64,000 nt of DNA, taken from the sequence record NC_070952.1. One strand, written 5' to 3'. The position numbers and the translations under genes are program-made. Of the stretch, positions 8,767 through 46,627 are shown piece after piece (position 1 is the stretch's first letter; each line of letters begins with the position of its first letter). The notes under the pieces were generated by a model, which was given only the letters and a program-made list of their open reading frames with translations, ran no database searches and was not told the origin of the DNA.

Positions 8767-8820
8767 TTAACTGAGGTCTATATTATCTAAGTGTATAACT
8801 CAATTAAATTAATTTAAAGG
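8767..8820 (+). repeat. 54-bp direct repeat copy 1 containing an early promoter and RBS
   Basis: TTAACTGAGGTCTATATTATCTAAGTGTATAACTCAATTAAATTAATTTAAAGG, identical to 11837-11890. Confidence 0.95.
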
Positions 8821-15377: not shown

Positions 15378-16231
15378 TATCGTTTCCTTGGAACAATCAT
15401 TTTCAACTGGTCGGTTTTACCTTTGGCATCAGCATACGCCATATACTTCTTCATTCGTTCATTATAGAACTCTTTGAATTGCTGAGCAGCATCTGAGTAT
15501 CCTTGAATATCATCTTGGACATCATCAACGGTAACACCGAAACGAGAAACGGCTTCTTGCATCCCACGACGACAGGTCTTATAGATGTACGCTTTCACAC
15601 CCAGCTCAACCAACTCGGCAAACTTGTCGAACATCTTAGTGGGGACACCATTAAAGTTCTCGTCGTAAGACAAGATCACTTTAGCGATCATGTTAAACAT
15701 GGCAGAACCGGCATCACGAATAATAAAGGAGTTAGGTCCTACCATCGTGAAGCTGTTAAACGAACGGGTGACATTACTGTCCGTCAATCCGCTGATCAAT
15801 CGGTTCATGCTGTTGTTCATCGCACTGGCACCGCAACTGGCGTAGTTACCAAAGTTATAGCCGTTAGCGACAGCCCGGTTAATGTTACCAGGGTACACTT
15901 CCACCACTTCTAAGATACGACGACCACCTGTTAGGAAATCAGGGACGTTAACCCAAATGACTCCACCGGCCAGATTTTCAATCTGAGCACCAGAAAGATC
16001 GATGATCTCAGTTTGACCACCGGCCACCTGAAGCAATGGCGCTACCATCTTGTTAACGACTTTCTCACGGATACCTTGCTCAACAGTGAACGAGTCATTA
16101 CTTGGTCCCCAGATACCACCGTACCCATTGTTGGGATTATAGAAGGCAAGCTTCAATAAATAATCGGTAATGTCCGTGGGTCCATTTATTACATAGTCGA
16201 TAGCAAAATCGACTGGGTTGCTTAAACTCAT
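15377..16231 (-). CDS. Conserved jumbo-phage protein, probably virion-associated
   Basis: 284 aa, GAGGT RBS, CGTATG motif at 16281-16286 on the minus strand. Confidence 0.5.
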   Translation of the reverse strand: MSLSNPVDFAIDYVINGPTDITDYLLKLAFYNPNNGYGGIWGPSNDSFTVEQGIREKVVNKMVAPLLQVAGGQTEIIDLSGAQIENLAGGVIWVNVPDFLTGGRRILEVVEVYPGNINRAVANGYNFGNYASCGASAMNNSMNRLISGLTDSNVTRSFNSFTMVGPNSFIIRDAGSAMFNMIAKVILSYDENFNGVPTKMFDKFAELVELGVKAYIYKTCRRGMQEAVSRFGVTVDDVQDDIQGYSDAAQQFKEFYNERMKKYMAYADAKGKTDQLKMIVPRKR

Positions 16232-16346
16232 AGTTACCTCTATTTCGAAATAGTCTTATTACAAAGATAATAAGATGTCTCATACGTTATCCATCCTAGG
16301 ACACATATGGAACGAGCTCATATGATCAAAGAGAAAACCATGCATA

Positions 16347-16377
16347 AACCCCCACCCCCGTGAGGAGGTGGGGGGTT
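16347..16377 (-). terminator. GC-rich terminator-like hairpin
   Basis: AACCCCCACCCCC-GTGA-GGAGGTGGGGGGTT; stem is better on the minus strand (C-A becomes G-U), where T-rich sequence follows. Confidence 0.6.
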
Positions 16378-16379
16378 AA

Positions 16380-17375
16380 GATATTGTTACCCAGCTTTGG
16401 TGTTTATAAACACCCTAGAAAAGACTCTGCGTAAATAACACGGGTGCCCCCGATCCATTACGAAAATCCTTAATAGGCTGTCTACTCTACTGATTGACAA
16501 CTTCTCCCTTGGCATAGGGAGCGGACTGTTTATTATCCACAAGGTACCGCTTGCCAACGGGCCATAGGAATAATGCTGACGTTCCTCTAGAATCGTAGAT
16601 TGAGGCTGCTCCTCACAGTTAAGGCGGAGCGATTCATGACGGATCTGTCAGGAGTTGGAGTCTCCAGATAACAGAACCCGTTTCGTCACTTTGTTTGTCA
16701 TCGCGGACTCATCAGATGGTTACGATGCCCCCACCACGGGAGAAATCCACTCCATATCACGGAGAGCAGATAAGGTTGAGAATCTTGATATCACCCAGGA
16801 AGACTAGCAAGTCTCCTGCTTTAGCCGCCTTTGATGCAACGTAAATGTGCTCGGCGGTTACCCTACGGTTTTCGTTCAAGATTCTCAAGAGGTTGTACCA
16901 ATGGTTGAAACACTGTGAGCGCTTATCCGTCAGGTATAATTAAAGCTCTATCTGGATATCAGCCACTGGTACAAAGAGGTTAACGACGACGGATCATCGT
17001 TAAGGAAAGGGCGCAACTTACCCATTTCTAAAGATGTTGTATCCTAATGGTGTTCCCATGGAATGTTTCGGGTTCGTTTCCAATTACTCGGCGTTATCGC
17101 CAAAGTGTCCTGAGCTTGGACGAAGGGAACCTATTCTCTTTAGACGCGTTGCAATGATACAGTAATTTTCAAACTATTGTATCGCCCACCAAGAGCTACT
17201 TCAATTAGTGAACTTAAGTCACCGTTCACTCTTGGATTTAACCCAGCAGTGCAACCTGCCGAGCATTGCCCTCGTTACTACCCACACCTGGATAACAAGG
17301 GTCTTACAAACGAATATAACGGGGTGATGAAACCATGTCGGTCCGCAGACCGGCAATCAGTTACACTCGAATGAA
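16380..17375. ncRNA. Candidate ~1-kb structured non-coding RNA, family not recognised
   Basis: No credible ORF; many nested helices (13-bp 16776-16788/16876-16888; 16893-16908/16959-16974; 16822-16829/16853-16860; 17027-17034/17137-17144); less AT-rich than other intergenic spacers. Confidence 0.65.
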
Positions 17376-17388
17376 TTACATAATATAC

Positions 17389-18006
17389 TTATGATATATG
17401 AAATCCTGGGGTGTTAGGATCTTGGTCTTCACGAACAACGATTAGCTGTGTGTACCGAGTATCTAATTTTCCCGTGGTCGCATCAACTTTACGCCAACTT
17501 TTGGATGTGGAGCGTGTATCGAGATACCAAGTCACCGTAACCATTTCGTCTACGGGCTTGAGTACGTTAGGATTTTTACCTTCTCTAACGGTGATGAATT
17601 CCAAATGAGAATACGACATACCACAATCTCGAACATACGCCATTTTTAACGCGGTATCACCACAGATGTCCAGGCTAAACCATTTTGTTTCGCGTTTGTC
17701 GCGATACCACACTTTAAGTGGGGCTTGCTTATGGATAACTGTAATTGTCTTACCGTCATCGCCAATGATGTACGCTTCCTGATCTTCAAAAATAAAGATC
17801 GGTTTACCTCCGTTTTTAGACCAGTTTAATACGGCCACAACACCCGGTTCAGGAGTTTCCTCCTCATAACCAAATGTTCTTTTACCGAAACTACCGTTCA
17901 TATCAGGATGAACCACAGTAAAGTCAGCGCATAAGTGGACATAATCAGTATCTGTAGTTCCGTCTTCGCAAAGGGTAATTTTCTTCAGTAACATATTTTC
18001 TCTCAC
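17389..18006 (-). CDS. Hypothetical protein
   Basis: 205-aa ORF in the minus-strand cluster. Confidence 0.65.
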   Translation of the reverse strand: MRENMLLKKITLCEDGTTDTDYVHLCADFTVVHPDMNGSFGKRTFGYEEETPEPGVVAVLNWSKNGGKPIFIFEDQEAYIIGDDGKTITVIHKQAPLKVWYRDKRETKWFSLDICGDTALKMAYVRDCGMSYSHLEFITVREGKNPNVLKPVDEMVTVTWYLDTRSTSKSWRKVDATTGKLDTRYTQLIVVREDQDPNTPGFHIS

Positions 18007-18055
18007 AGTTAGTAGTAGTGGTCGGAGATCAAAATAGAAATAGGGTATTGCTACC

Positions 18056-18193
18056 CTACACGTTTAACTTATATCCTTCTTTAACTTTGGTCATACTGAA
18101 TGCACCACCATCGCCATCAAGGTATAAGGTTTTTTCAGCATTCTGATTTTGGCGTCGGATCTTTTCTTTCAAAGAAGTCTTTTTCTTTTTCAT
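18056..18193 (-). CDS. Small basic protein (45 aa), not in ORF track
   Basis: MKKKKTSLKEKIRRQNQNAEKTLYLDGDGGAFSMTKVKEGYKLNV; fills the operon gap. Confidence 0.5.
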   Translation of the reverse strand: MKKKKTSLKEKIRRQNQNAEKTLYLDGDGGAFSMTKVKEGYKLNV

Positions 18194-18220
18194 GGTCAAA
18201 ATTTATCGCCTTTATCAAAA

Positions 18221-18358
18221 TTAGATTTTACAACCTTCGCAGTCGGCTTCATCACCGATAGCAGCGGCTTCTTTGTTTGCCTCGTCCTGACGCTCTTTAT
18301 TGCGAGCTTCAGCTTCATCGAGACCATCAAATGCCAAATCGTCTAAATCGAAATCCAC
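18221..18358 (-). CDS. Small acidic CxxC peptide resembling the class I RNR alpha C-terminal redox tail (45 aa), not in ORF track
   Basis: GTG start with GAGGA RBS inside the grx 3' end; MDFDLDDLAFDGLDEAEARNKERQDEANKEAAAIGDEADCEGCKI. Confidence 0.7.
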   Translation of the reverse strand: MDFDLDDLAFDGLDEAEARNKERQDEANKEAAAIGDEADCEGCKI

Positions 18359-18362
18359 AGTT

Positions 18363-18617
18363 CTATTCCTCTACTTCGGGCTTATTAGGCTTATTAAGAT
18401 AAGACACCAAATCAGTATAACCACCGACATGAACATCATCAACAAAGATCTGAGGAACGGAAGTAACAGGACCACCCACGATCTTTTCAAGACCTTCTTT
18501 ACCGAGGCCTGTTTCAATGATATCAATATATTCGTTATCGACATCGCGTTCCTCTACCAACTGTTTAGCGCGTTTACAAAAGACGCACTGATCCTTACCA
18601 TAAATTACAACTTTCAT
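18363..18617 (-). CDS. grx: Glutaredoxin (Grx/NrdC-like)
   Basis: 84 aa; IYGKDQCVFCKRAK active site, SVPQIFV, GGYTDL motifs. Confidence 0.93.
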   Translation of the reverse strand: MKVVIYGKDQCVFCKRAKQLVEERDVDNEYIDIIETGLGKEGLEKIVGGPVTSVPQIFVDDVHVGGYTDLVSYLNKPNKPEVEE

Positions 18618-18784
18618 TTCTTTTTCTTCCTGGTTAATTTCTGGCGGTCACGGATATTGGAGACCTTTTCTAATCTGCGGTGAATACTGTTAAGCAGGTT
18701 AGGAGTATATCCAATAGATCCGCCTACGTCGGTGTTAACCAACGGAACCTCATTCATAACCAATTTACTGGTTGAAAGAATCAT
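18614..18784 (-). CDS. Small hypothetical protein with basic C-terminus
   Basis: Likely real start MILSTSKLV (56 aa) inside the listed 112-aa ORF; ATGA overlap with grx. Confidence 0.5.
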   Translation of the reverse strand: MILSTSKLVMNEVPLVNTDVGGSIGYTPNLLNSIHRRLEKVSNIRDRQKLTRKKKK

Positions 18785-18789
18785 GATAA

Positions 18790-18915
18790 TTACCCAAAGC
18801 TGATGTGGATGAATGAGAAGATCCAACGGAGACCCTCGATAGCACACCAACCAGCGACGGCGCACACTAAACCGAAGACAATTATCATTCCGGTCCAACC
18901 ATTGCCCGACATCAT
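18790..18915 (-). CDS. Small membrane peptide (41 aa), not in ORF track
   Basis: GGAG RBS; MMSGNGWTGMIIVFGLVCAVAGWCAIEGLRWIFSFIHISFG. Confidence 0.55.
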   Translation of the reverse strand: MMSGNGWTGMIIVFGLVCAVAGWCAIEGLRWIFSFIHISFG

Positions 18916-18932
18916 AAATTATCTCCAGACAA

Positions 18933-18962
18933 ACAAAAAGAAAAGGGATCAATCGACCCCTT
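18933..18962 (-). terminator. Intrinsic terminator closing the tRNA/tRNA-like array
   Basis: Minus strand AAGGGGTC-GATT-GATCCCTT followed by TTCTTTTTG. Confidence 0.75.
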
Positions 18963-18982
18963 CTCTCTTCGTTAATAAAGGG

Positions 18983-19080
18983 TTACACGCCACACCTACC
19001 GACAGATGGGAAGTGGATCCCAGGTATGGTCACCTAAGTACCCCTGGCCTGTTGCACCCCGGCTACAGCATGGCGTGTAA
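18983..19080 (-). ncRNA. tRNA-like cloverleaf element 2 (98 nt, no CCA)
   Basis: 10-bp closing stem TTACACGCCA/TGGCGTGTAA enclosing three hairpins with 2/1/4/0-nt linkers, as in tRNA. Confidence 0.65.
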
Positions 19081-19082
19081 TT

Positions 19083-19186
19083 TGGCGCGGTCTTGGGAGT
19101 TTAACCCAACTACTGTGAAGATATCCAATGGTTGAAACTAATCATCCATCATCATACCTTCACGATATCTCTAAAGATATAACCGC
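19083..19186 (-). ncRNA. tRNA-like element 1 with 3'-GCCA and extended anticodon-position arm (104 nt)
   Basis: GCGGTT/GACCGC stem + G + CCA; T-arm TTGGG-TTAAACT-CCCAA; ATATCT-TTAG-AGATAT arm; long GTGAAG...CTTCAC arm. Confidence 0.7.
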
Positions 19187-19191
19187 AGATT

Positions 19192-19277
19192 TGGAGCCAA
19201 GTACAGGATTCGAACCTGTGAAGCCTTACGGCAGGGGATTTGCAATCCTCTCGCTTTGCCCACTCACGAAACTTGGC
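19192..19277 (-). tRNA. tRNA-Cys(GCA) with long variable arm, encoded CCA
   Basis: GCCAAGT TT CGTGAGTGGGCAAAGCG A GAGGA-TTGCAAA-TCCCC TGCCGTAAGGCTTC ACAGG-TTCGAAT-CCTGT ACTTGGC T CCA. Confidence 0.93.
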
Positions 19278-19283
19278 GAATCT

Positions 19284-19778
19284 TTAAACTGTTTTATTCT
19301 GATCATCAACAACAGGGGTTGCTGGCGCAGAAGAAACTACAGTTTGGGGTGACGCTGGTGAAGCCGTTAACACGGGAACAACTTCAGGTTTCACTTCTTC
19401 CTTTTCCAGATGAAGTTTTACCAGTTCTTCCTTAGTCAAGGTTTCAAAATGCTGAACTAACGCTTCGATCTGCTGAAGGTGTGATTCACCATTGACTTTT
19501 AAAGTAGAGAGTTCGACAAGTACCTTGGCTTTAAACGTTTCCCACAGTCCATCTCCCACGTCTTTGAGTTTCTCTTGGACATCGGCAGGAAGAAGCTTCG
19601 TTTTAAGCTCGTTAACTTGTGCTTGTAGTTGACTTTGAATACCATCAACATAAGCCTGCAGTTTAGGGTCTGTTGCAACACTACCGGTGGTATTATGTTT
19701 ACGGAACAAAATCGCACCGGCAATACCGACAGCAACACCTACAACCAACATAACTAACAGCATCCCAATAGAATTCAT
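19284..19778 (-). CDS. N-terminally membrane-anchored coiled-coil protein
   Basis: TM helix MLLVMLVVGVAVGIAGAILF then basic RKH and heptad-rich region; AAGGT RBS. Confidence 0.7.
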   Translation of the reverse strand: MNSIGMLLVMLVVGVAVGIAGAILFRKHNTTGSVATDPKLQAYVDGIQSQLQAQVNELKTKLLPADVQEKLKDVGDGLWETFKAKVLVELSTLKVNGESHLQQIEALVQHFETLTKEELVKLHLEKEEVKPEVVPVLTASPASPQTVVSSAPATPVVDDQNKTV

Positions 19779-19914
19779 TTTACTTACCTTTATATTTTTA
19801 TTGACTGAGAAAGTTCAGTCAAAAGATAAATAAGATGAACTCTAATAATATTGCCGCCTTGATATTTAAATCAGTAATTCCCGATTTTTCGGGTATTGCG
19901 GGCGGCCATTACTC

Positions 19915-20139
19915 TTATCCAGCATTATACTCGGATAAGATTATACCCTCAGGGACAAGAGCGTTTATAGCGACCGTGCTTACGTTAAGGAATTCATCCG
20001 AAGATGATTGATCTCCCTCAGCGAATAAAGCCAACGCTAACTCACGTGATCTTTCCTCTGTGGGTGCCGCTACCACTGTAGCGCAATAGTTATCGTAATC
20101 CCGATATTTATCGGTACGTTCAATAAGATAAAGTTTCAT
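19915..20139 (-). CDS. Small hypothetical phage protein
   Basis: 74 aa, MKLYLIERTD...VVAAPTEE..RELA pattern typical of small phage proteins. Confidence 0.65.
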   Translation of the reverse strand: MKLYLIERTDKYRDYDNYCATVVAAPTEERSRELALALFAEGDQSSSDEFLNVSTVAINALVPEGIILSEYNAG

Positions 20140-20369
20140 CTATTTAATCTCGATTAGATACAGTAGGTGTACTTTCAGAAGCTGTGAAAGGACTGTTCTC
20201 ATCTTGACGTAAAACTTATCTATTGATTGATCAACCAAATTGTGGTCCTGTCATTCTGGATCTCTTCCCGTCGACTGGAACATGTATAATCGAGAGAGAT
20301 ACTAGATCCGCCCATTGGCTTTCTCTAGCTGGAATTCTTTTAACAGAATATAAAGAGCTGATTAAAAAG

Positions 20370-20669
20370 TTACTCTACTTCAATCCAGTCTTCAGCCTGC
20401 AGATCCGAAGAGGATGGAACCCAGGAATTCACGCGACCATTGGTTTCGTTAACAATAACAAAGAAAGGATCGATAAAAGCAGGTTCACCGTTTTCCAATT
20501 GAACTTCATTGGTAGCAATTGCACCGTGGATCTTAACGTACAGCTTTTTACCGTTCCATCCAACGCGAGCAAACTTACGAGGCTTCTTAGTTTTCAGTGA
20601 ACCACGCATGGCTTCGTTAGCGATAGCATAACTGACCGTAACTGGAGCAGCGGAATTAGATTGTGTCAT
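20370..20669 (-). CDS. DUF2829-family phage protein
   Basis: RVGWNGKKLY and WVPSSSDLQAEDW signature motifs; GGAG RBS. Confidence 0.8.
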   Translation of the reverse strand: MTQSNSAAPVTVSYAIANEAMRGSLKTKKPRKFARVGWNGKKLYVKIHGAIATNEVQLENGEPAFIDPFFVIVNETNGRVNSWVPSSSDLQAEDWIEVE

Positions 20670-20699
20670 ACGTTCTCCAAAATAGATATAGTTATCTTT

Positions 20700-21200
20700 C
20701 TATGAATACTCGTAAATACACATAGAAAGAGGGGACGTTGATTCCCCCTTGCCCAATGTACAGGCTAAGCAACACAGTATCCGAAATAACAGCGCGTCAT
20801 TTCTTTATGCCAACTTACAAAAAAAAATAAGCATAAAGAAGCAACACGATAAAAAGCCTAGAGGAAGGAGGAAAAGGGAGACCAAGCCTCTAGGCTTTAC
20901 TTATCACGACTAACAATACAACAGCAAGAAAACATGCCCCCATGCTTTCTTTAAAGACACTTGTAAAAATACCTTTAAAGAAAGGGGGAGGAAGGCCGCC
21001 TCCCCACTTTATAACGAGATGAATAATGAATGGCAAAAATACCAAGAAGCACGATGGCGTCATACTTCTTTATGAACACTCGGGAATATGGAATGCTCAT
21101 AAAAAAGTAGAGATGTTCGAGCAAACATCTCTTTTATCAAATGATAAGAATGATTGGCAATACAATAAGAAAATTGAACAGTCTTTTCTTACATAAAATA
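20700..21200 (-). ncRNA. Candidate structured leader/sRNA
   Basis: ORF-free; 12-bp stems 20853-20864/20887-20898 and 20945-20956/20973-20984; G-U pairs in the 21045-21070 hairpin favour the minus strand. Confidence 0.4.
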
Positions 21201-21225
21201 AGTAACTCTCATAATAAATTAAATA

Positions 21226-21245
21226 GATATTATCAGAGTGAAGTA
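21226..21245 (+). promoter_or_regulatory. Early (virion RNAP-type) promoter
   Basis: GATATTAT-CAGA-GTG; same D-A-Y-ATTAY-N4-RTG motif at 8779, 11849, 28773, 38162, 47931, 53123, 57568, 62714; resembles the phiKZ early consensus TATATTAC. Confidence 0.7.
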
Positions 21246-21276
21246 TCTAACTTAGTTTTTAACCTTAGGATAGAAA

Positions 21277-21876
21277 ATGAATATTGAAACTGTTCGTACT
21301 GAATTCACAGATTTACTGATTGACCATTTTGATGTGCAGTCGGTAAAAAGCTATATTGTAGATCCAACCATGTTACGTAACATGGGCGAGTCCCGTTATA
21401 ACAAAGTTATTGGGATCGAGATTATCATCAACCGCACCATGCGTTTGCATATCTTTGGATCAGAGCGTCAGGGGAAGATGCTGTTTACCCGTCCTAAAGA
21501 AGGGATCGATAAATACATCATTGGGGAATTGCGTTCTTACGATTTCTATTTCTGTTTGAGCGACAAACACCCAAGTCACCGCAACCTTGTTGCTCGCATC
21601 ATTGATATCTGGCTGGGTCACTTAGCAGCAGAGAACATCAGATCCACATTGTCCTTCTATCTGAAGGAAAGTGGTAACGTTCTCGATTACTGCTTTGGGT
21701 ACAAGGTATTATGTACACAACGTGACACCAAAACGTATGACGCAGTATTTGATGTATTGGTTAACAAGAACGGCCGGTATCACACTTACCGTGGAACATT
21801 CACTAATGGTAACTTAAGCGCCATTACTGATGAAGATAATGTGAGCGTTCCGCCGGAGAAAATGTTTGAGGTTTAA
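21277..21876 (+). CDS. Hypothetical early protein
   Basis: 199 aa, first gene after the early promoter, AGGA RBS. Confidence 0.75.
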   Translation: MNIETVRTEFTDLLIDHFDVQSVKSYIVDPTMLRNMGESRYNKVIGIEIIINRTMRLHIFGSERQGKMLFTRPKEGIDKYIIGELRSYDFYFCLSDKHPSHRNLVARIIDIWLGHLAAENIRSTLSFYLKESGNVLDYCFGYKVLCTQRDTKTYDAVFDVLVNKNGRYHTYRGTFTNGNLSAITDEDNVSVPPEKMFEV

Positions 21877-46604: not shown

Positions 46605-46627
46605 TCAATTTTATGTAAAACAATTTA

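Follow-up and report, generated by a model that had tools for sequence, protein, structure and literature searches.

A candidate stable-RNA/tRNA locus with a ribozyme-bearing 1-kb RNA gene in Erwinia jumbo phage AH04

What does a phage genome hold in a 5-kb stretch of which only about half encodes protein? The stretch lies in a window of 64,000 nucleotides (nt; record NC_070952.1) that is 100% identical to bases 1-64000 of Erwinia phage AH04 (MZ501267.1, 262,639 bp, genus Meadowvirus), a nucleus-forming jumbo phage related to OBP; window coordinates are those of the MZ501267.1 record. The island sits between late virion genes and the divergent gp24 gene cluster. From gp12 to gp24 (16232-21276), annotated or conserved coding sequences cover ~2450 of 5045 nt and ~51% is non-coding, in gaps of 1157, 607, 276 (plus an 86-nt tRNA), 230 and 136 nt, while no other gap within the record's first 50 kb is longer than 313 nt. 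An earlier note on this DNA had described an RNA island about half non-coding, in which structured RNA alternates with very small open reading frames (ORFs) on the minus strand, in a window of otherwise short, AT-rich gaps. The non-coding share, the interleaving of conserved structured RNA with tiny ORFs and, over those 50 kb, the short gaps were all borne out; the AT-rich part was looked at by composition profile alone (0.45-0.50 GC in the island RNAs, 0.30-0.32 GC in the promoter region 21000-21450). All elements of the island are on the minus strand, where a sliding 150-nt fold profile gives strong excess folding at 16225-16374, 18850-19224, 19750-19899 and 20725-21249. In our view, held with more confidence than doubt, the island is best explained as the clade's stable-RNA/tRNA locus, made up of several minus-strand units.

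Homologues of gp12, the gene adjoining the island, occur in 232 phage records, including phage EL, OBP and many other jumbo phages, which we take to be of the Chimalliviridae kind. The nearest relatives of AH04 are Serratia phages Yubaba and Sureiya, Klebsiella phage N1M2, Shewanella phage SXP01 and Kosakonia phage Kc263, together with Pseudomonas phage OBP, Pantoea phage Survivor and Edwardsiella phage pEt-SU. Their common gene order runs from a Tad2-like (DUF2829) gene through small ORFs, tRNAs and glutaredoxin to an unannotated gap of 0.75-1.2 kb, after which come two virion proteins, thymidylate kinase and terminase. The comparison across related phages that the earlier note had called for thus finds both gene order and RNA elements recurring in OBP-like phages, and contigs from four sequencing runs place near-identical phages in several metagenomes. 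Rfam, searched at gathering score and at E up to 10 with the whole window and with sub-regions, matched only the tRNA and, below threshold, a hammerhead core; RNase P, tmRNA (transfer-messenger RNA), group I or II introns, GOLLD, ROOL and Y-RNA were not found.

The 1-kb RNA gene and its hammerhead core

16346-17379, minus: non-coding RNA gene of ~1,034 nt, consisting of 5' domain, hammerhead, optional 3' domain and terminator; 12 homologues, no Rfam family
17376-17387, minus: promoter-like motif TATATTATGTAA, right where the 1-kb RNA has its 5' end, with G17379 as predicted start
17184-17308, minus: multi-helix core of the 5' domain, GUAAGACC to CUGGUGGG, from covariation and model R2
16634-16727, minus: type I hammerhead ribozyme, core CUGAUGA at 16715-16709 and GAAA at 16684-16681
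16381-16637, minus: 3' domain of ~260 nt downstream of the predicted cut, from phage alignments
16346-16375, minus: intrinsic terminator CCCCCAC...GGGGUGGGGG, then UUUAUG (z-score -5.3)

Homologues of the 1-kb RNA were found in 12 related phages or contigs by alignment and pattern search. By BLAST, four other jumbo phages have short conserved patches in DNA without annotation. Alignment of the syntenic gaps from eight phages, together with four jumbo-size viral contigs, shows invariant blocks split by variable stems. A first pattern for viral contigs (GACGAAACGGG...CCGTC) was too loose, with one true locus (L078) among the matches listed, and a tighter pattern recovered the viral-contig homologues. 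A 5'-domain pattern, run once over metagenomes, gave 120 chance matches without a true relative among them, a result that says nothing on absence. The element has no ORF. When AH04 is compared with its close relatives, mismatches lack a 3-nt periodicity and most indels are of 1-2 nt; a coding element was therefore rejected, and the 1-kb element is non-coding. It belongs to no Rfam family, no paper describing it was found, and the literature yielded nothing on hammerheads or large non-coding RNAs in jumbo phages or Chimalliviridae.

The core of the 5' domain comprises 125 nt and four helices. In the alignment, 86.7% of its cells are paired, while slid partners give 35-53%; changes on both sides are seen in 19 of 31 pairs, and none of 500 shuffles reaches the observed pairing. 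The model built from this core (R2) matches all 12 homologues and none of five Aeromonas phage loci around gp12 homologues. The hammerhead covariance model (R1), which also picks up ordinary hammerheads in unrelated viral contigs, has no match in five whole genomes of Aeromonas OBP-like phages. With both absent from these Aeromonas sequences, the 1-kb RNA is confined to a sub-clade. Two metagenomic relatives (L141:903-1411 and L149:790-1314) are without ~130-160 nt of the 5' domain and keep the core, the hammerhead and the flanks, so that part of the RNA is a dispensable peripheral domain. Directly upstream of the RNA, in place of the promoter motif, Yubaba, N1M2 and OBP carry a tRNA-Met. As a separate observation, a GAUAUC palindrome (GUGAUAUC, minus strand, ~16830-16800) is apparently unpaired and present in 11 of the 12 copies, OBP having GACAUC instead.

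The order of the parts that follow identifies a type I hammerhead, with the cut predicted after C16638. The conserved block reads CUGA-N-GAGUCY ... RGACGAAACGGG ... CCGUC. Stem III and a distal hairpin occupy 16681-16639, the cleavage triplet GUC is at 16640-16638, and the predicted cut falls between 16638 and 16637. Stem I is open and stems II and III are closed, as in type I, and 16727-16723, on the 5' side of stem I, forms a pseudoknot with loop II (16703-16699). CUGA-N-GA, GAAA, the A15.1-U16.1 pair and GUC are invariant in 12 of 12 sequences, N7 alone varying (U, A or C). Across the 12-sequence alignment, stems I, II and III, the distal hairpin and the pseudoknot are 89.8% paired (35-49% with slid partners), with stems I-III at 85-94%; both sides change in 20 of 31 pairs, and again no shuffle out of 500 attains the observed pairing. 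The pseudoknot helix of 6 bp is 97% paired with four of its six pairs covarying, and was found independently by RNAalifold. On the strength of this model, self-cleavage of the transcript is very likely.

The 3' domain beyond the cut is present in six members (AH04, L140, Kc263, Yubaba, N1M2 and OBP). SXP01, Survivor and pEt-SU lack it, and in them the terminator comes right after the ribozyme.

Prophages are known to contain hammerheads, whose presumed task there is the processing of long transcripts; ~40% of them use a stem I/II pseudoknot (PMC3088659). With the prophage and phage hammerheads (Perreault et al. 2011) the AH04 ribozyme shares the core CUGANGA, GAAA and GUC, the three helices, a pseudoknot that links loop II to the stem I side, a phage setting and a presumed part in transcript processing. 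Unlike the prophage ones, it lies inside a large conserved structured RNA and not between protein genes. It also differs in its long loop II (~17 nt), its stem III of ~40 nt with the conserved loop UCUCCAG, and its sub-threshold score in Rfam.

As a whole the RNA recalls GOLLD and ROOL, which are phage-encoded RNAs of 600-800 nt or more with many covarying helices, often found beside tRNA islands, one GOLLD lying downstream of tRNA-Met. The 1-kb RNA is likewise a large multi-helix phage RNA beside tRNA genes. However, the Rfam models of GOLLD and ROOL do not match it, and its host range is a different one, that of a clade of nucleus-forming jumbo phages of Gammaproteobacteria. To our knowledge, neither GOLLD nor ROOL contains a self-cleaving ribozyme.

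The tRNA array, the leader and the small genes

19192-19277, minus: tRNA with anticodon GCA, long variable arm, discriminator U73 and encoded CCA
19083-19186, minus: tRNA-like RNA A, with 6-bp acceptor stem, 6-bp D-like hairpin and G-CCA end
18983-19080, minus: small RNA B, with 9-10-bp closing stem and invariant core CAUACCUGGGAUCCACUUCCCA including the palindrome GGAUCC
18933-18964, minus: terminator-like hairpin GGGGUC-GAUU-GAUCCC, then UUUUCUUUUU, read from the sequence (z-score -5.1 for 18850-18999)

A single tRNA is called in the island, an 86-nt class II body with a Cys anticodon. The tRNA of SXP01 is of the same kind, and that of pEt-SU resembles it in body but has GUA (Tyr) and A73 (relatives' loci compared: L006:4303-4389 and L008:4416-4501); the other tRNAs that relatives have here are Ser, Asn, Arg and Met. 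Directly 3' of the tRNA, RNA A combines an acceptor-like stem, a T-like arm (UUGGG-UUAAACU-CCCAA) and an NCCA end, as expected of a tRNA-like stable RNA. The place of the anticodon arm is taken by an arm of ~20 bp with the near-invariant loop AUGAUUAGUUUC, and the variable region has 5 nt. Both sides change in 17 of 35 pairs over five phages, and the fold has a z-score of -4.67. RNA A is not called a tRNA by ARAGORN or Rfam; where a tRNA has a 5-bp anticodon stem with a 7-nt loop, GG in the D-loop and C56 in the T-loop, it has the ~20-bp arm, the D-like loop UUAG and the T-like loop UUAAACU. Its modelled fold makes it very likely that RNA A is trimmed at tRNA-type ends. RNA B is conserved in an alignment of six sequences, and in relatives lies directly 3' of a tRNA. 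Its GGAUCC (19025-19015, minus strand) is apparently unpaired and invariant in six of six copies; this palindrome and the GAUAUC of the 1-kb RNA could make kissing contacts. Neither RNA A nor RNA B has an Rfam match. In relatives their modules adjoin tRNAs, although the order differs.

The tRNA region of phage T4 has the same layout, with tRNA(s) and then two small stable RNAs on the same strand, flanked by tiny ORFs. There the tRNA cluster is followed by rnaD and rnaC, annotated as 'small, stable RNA' (the order being tRNA-Arg, rnaD, rnaC), and the likeness is one of layout. The RNA encoded by T4 rnaC has a tRNA-like fold with a T arm and long extra arms, like RNA A of AH04. The function of the T4 stable RNAs is still unknown (PMC9697503). 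AH04 differs in having one tRNA where T4 has eight, and its 1-kb ribozyme RNA and structured leader are absent among the annotated features of the T4 tRNA region. The island is best described as a T4-like stable-RNA/tRNA locus with two additions, a structured leader and a large RNA of the GOLLD/ROOL kind that is new and bears a ribozyme.

The leader lies at the other end of the island.

20670-21192, minus: structured leader of ~520 nt upstream of gp22, with four two-part cassettes
21189-21200, minus: promoter-like motif TATTTTATGTAA at the head of the leader, predicted start G21192, near-invariant in 8 phages
21132-21109 (a) and 21108-21065 (b), minus: cassette M1
21005-20985 (a) and 20984-20945 (b), minus: cassette M2
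20896-20855 (a) and 20842-20799 (b), minus: cassette M3
20749-20730 (a) and 20729-20696 (b), minus: cassette M4

Each cassette consists of a first hairpin (a) and, directly after it, a long hairpin (b) of the form CUUUCUUUAUR...(G/A)AGU...YAUAAAGAAAG, which occurs nowhere else in the 64-kb window. Most relatives have five cassettes, compared with four in AH04. The fold of 20670-21200 has a z-score of -9.46, and 11 terminator-like sites are found against 4.5 expected in shuffles. Over eight phages, 91.6% of the cells in the leader hairpins are paired (43-56% when slid), 39 of 93 pairs change on both sides, and none of 500 shuffles matches this, with the caveat that the structure was drawn from the same alignment used to score the pairing. 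The a hairpins, with their U-rich (pyrimidine) tracts, resemble terminators or attenuators, so that the leader may, on this model, consist of attenuators, or of short terminated RNAs, in series. Three ORFs here were considered as genes. ORF57 and ORF49 are not conserved in relatives, and the annotated gp23 (21026-21196, plus strand), antisense to the leader, has no tblastn match in any relative and is probably not a gene.

Between leader and tRNA, and between RNA B and the 1-kb RNA, lie the remaining features.

20370-20669, minus: gp22, 99 amino acids, Tad2-like (formerly DUF2829), PF11195 at 56.9 bits with a cut-off of 25; kept in all relatives checked
20140-20369, minus: non-coding gap with conserved blocks; z-score near 0 (about -0.4 to +0.1), consensus fold -7 kcal/mol in 5 phages
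19915-20139, minus: gp21, 74 amino acids, unknown function (phrog_5444)
About 19845-19913, minus: three-way-junction fold closed by GCCGCC/GGCGGC, with an extended AU stem; z-score -9.85 for the 150-nt window 19750-19899
19772-19843, minus: long hairpin in which a U-rich strand lying upstream is paired with the gp20 AUG and Shine-Dalgarno sequence; same 150-nt window, z-score -9.85
19284-19778, minus: gp20, 164 amino acids, N-terminal membrane helix; found only in the AH04 clade
17389-18915, minus: run of small ORFs, namely gp18 (41 amino acids, membrane peptide), gp17 (56), gp16 (glutaredoxin, 84), gp15 (45), gp14 (45) and gp13 (201)

By Pfam family, gp22, which scores above the gathering threshold, is the sole anti-defence signal in the island. 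Apart from it and the glutaredoxin gp16, the island proteins have no informative match. The fold at 19845-19913 is conserved more than the flanking coding DNA in three AH04-clade sequences, and both it and the gp20 hairpin are highly conserved there, the three sequences being too few for much covariation. The hairpin is likely a translational control element of gp20. Of the five RNA elements that the earlier note had named, the 1-kb element, the tRNA and tRNA-like array, the GCCGCC fold and the leader stand. The fifth does not: 20140-20369 had been called hairpin-rich, but the overlying windows show no excess folding and the consensus fold is weak, leaving conserved blocks only. It is possibly an internal promoter or the 5' untranslated region of gp21. 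A 31-codon ORF in this gap was rejected as a gene, being frame-shifted in the close relative L141.

No homologue of gp13 was found in any of 16 related loci, including the closest contigs, and its place looks like a variable slot. The slot (17389-17994, minus strand) adjoins the promoter of the 1-kb RNA, and the closest contigs carry different DNA there.

Another side observation comes from sequencing run X5, which is RNA only by guess. Its four island contigs lie over 16952-17252, 16431-16582 and 20032-20290 only, that is, over parts of the 1-kb RNA and over the 230-nt gap with the start of gp21, and cover no other coding stretch. This placement is a faint hint of abundant RNA, and chance at low DNA coverage could also produce it.

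Transcription units and competing explanations

The promoter-like motif TATWTTATSTAA has four exact matches in 64 kb, at 8779 (plus), 11849 (plus), 17376 (minus) and 21189 (minus), all intergenic, and two of the four head the two largest non-coding stretches. With up to one mismatch there are seven matches against 2.2 expected; near and exact matches are all intergenic and all face a gene or RNA, except the near match at 46607, which faces a convergent gene. The copy at 17376-17387 is kept in AH04-clade contigs. About 20 nt beyond the copy at 21189-21200, a similar motif points in the opposite direction, towards gp24. In phiKZ the late-promoter core is TATG, with G as +1 (PMC4666361). With the same TATG inside the motif of AH04, which is longer than that of phiKZ, the predicted starts are 21192 and 17379. 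For the ends, the terminator tail in relatives is TTTATGTTTGT, which fits the phiKZ consensus (10.1101/2023.10.13.562163). Between the terminator of the 1-kb RNA and the gp12 start, 16232-16345 (minus strand) also holds two CATATG sequences, which fit a late promoter for the virion genes. The terminators inside the island (in the leader, at 18933-18964 and at 16346-16375), together with the promoter motifs, argue for more than one transcription unit; we count at least two and probably three.

The transcription starts and ends, the cleavage, the stability and the roles that we infer would fit together as follows. Unit 1 would start near 21192 and run through the 520-nt leader, whose four hairpin cassettes would act as tandem terminators or attenuators or, alternatively, yield short terminated RNAs. 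It would then encode the Tad2-like gp22, gp21 and gp20, the last with its ribosome-binding site buried in a hairpin, and end with the tRNA, RNA A, RNA B and the terminator at 18933-18964. Host tRNA-processing enzymes would probably cut out RNAs A and B, as with T4 RNAs C and D. After the run of small ORFs (glutaredoxin and peptides), the last unit would be the self-contained RNA gene of ~1,034 nt, starting near 17379 and ending in a phiKZ-style terminator at ~16346. The hammerhead cut after C16638 would give a 5' RNA of 742 nt, retaining the ribozyme core and carrying a 2',3'-cyclic phosphate at its end, and a 3' RNA of 292 nt that begins with a 5'-hydroxyl. Where relatives lack the 3' domain, this cut would do no more than remove the terminator hairpin. 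Most likely the cut serves to give a large structured RNA a defined 3' end, resistant to exonucleases and poly(A) addition.

Several points weigh against this proposal. The sequencing-run search found that no run recorded as RNA contains this DNA. The alignments hold 5-12 sequences each, several of them close relatives, and the promoter motif is based on four exact and seven near matches in one 64-kb window. The hammerhead does not reach the Rfam gathering score (Hammerhead_3, 16.3 against 48.5 bits, a partial match to the core only), for which its 17-nt loop II and ~40-nt stem III are probably responsible; at E up to 10, the other Rfam hammerhead models do not match. The fold of RNA B is tentative, with little covariation. 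The leader hairpins are inverted repeats, for which a role at the DNA level is possible, and AH04 terminators may leak, in which case read-through transcripts over several units are possible.

The earlier note had instead read the island as one minus-strand transcript processed into multiple RNAs. Processing is very likely; the single transcript is what the internal terminators and promoter motifs speak against. On this explanation RNase P and Z, RNase E and the hammerhead would cut one long transcript into an RNA-based host-takeover or anti-defence module. All elements do lie on one strand, the tRNA and RNA A imply RNase P-type processing and the hammerhead self-processing, and in Yubaba, N1M2 and OBP the 1-kb RNA abuts a tRNA-Met with which it is probably co-transcribed. 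A gene of the Tad2-like anti-defence family also opens the unit, yet nothing links the RNAs to defence systems. With terminator-like hairpins in the leader, at 18933-18964 and at 16346-16375, and with the 1-kb RNA of the AH04 clade headed directly by an exact promoter-like motif, we consider a single transcript of this kind unlikely. On another explanation, the 1-kb element would be a long 3' untranslated region or insulator and no functional RNA by itself. Hammerhead and terminator would then serve only to keep early or middle transcripts from upstream apart from the late virion operon (gp12, gp11), and the leader hairpins would be DNA operators or simple terminators within a divergent promoter region. 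The element sits exactly at the border of the virion genes, TATG sequences follow its terminator upstream of gp12, and prophage hammerheads are thought to split polycistronic transcripts into gene-length pieces. However, an insulator needs neither 650 nt of conserved multi-helix structure with compensatory changes nor a conserved, optional 3' domain, and the arms of the leader hairpins change while pairing is kept, which points to structure and not to a fixed protein-binding sequence. This, too, is improbable in our judgement.

A further possibility concerns the 1-kb RNA itself, which could be a self-assembling or scaffold RNA of the GOLLD/ROOL kind, trimmed by its ribozyme and building a higher-order particle. 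It has the habit of those RNAs, large and ornate, phage-borne and beside tRNAs, GOLLD env-38 being downstream of tRNA-Met, and the invariant single-stranded palindromes GAUAUC and GGAUCC could provide kissing contacts. Yet there is no sequence or model similarity to GOLLD or ROOL (Rfam, E up to 10), and the palindromes may be due to chance or make internal contacts, so that we give the idea very little weight. The stable-RNA/tRNA locus of several minus-strand units remains the explanation we prefer.

What the locus may mean for nucleus-forming phages

Large structured phage RNAs, among them GOLLD, ROOL and T4 RNAs C and D, are still without known function, and the AH04 locus adds a new example. 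It occurs in jumbo phages that can be grown in culture, with Erwinia, Serratia, Klebsiella, Pseudomonas and Edwardsiella as hosts. What is unusual is that the large RNA carries a self-cleaving ribozyme, giving a biochemical handle with a predicted cut at one nucleotide. As a long shot, the previously undescribed ornate, self-trimming RNA of ~1 kb could, with the tRNA-like and small RNAs, be an RNA-only machine or decoy in infection. If true, it might form a GOLLD/ROOL-like particle, or act as a sponge for host RNA-targeting defences or ribosomes, and the island would be an RNA-based takeover toolkit. The island is also a source of candidate promoters, terminators and elements of translational control in a phage clade that has been poorly mapped. 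Because nucleus-forming phages split transcription from translation, an abundant non-coding RNA whose ends are defined would raise questions of RNA export, stability and counter-defence in these phages.

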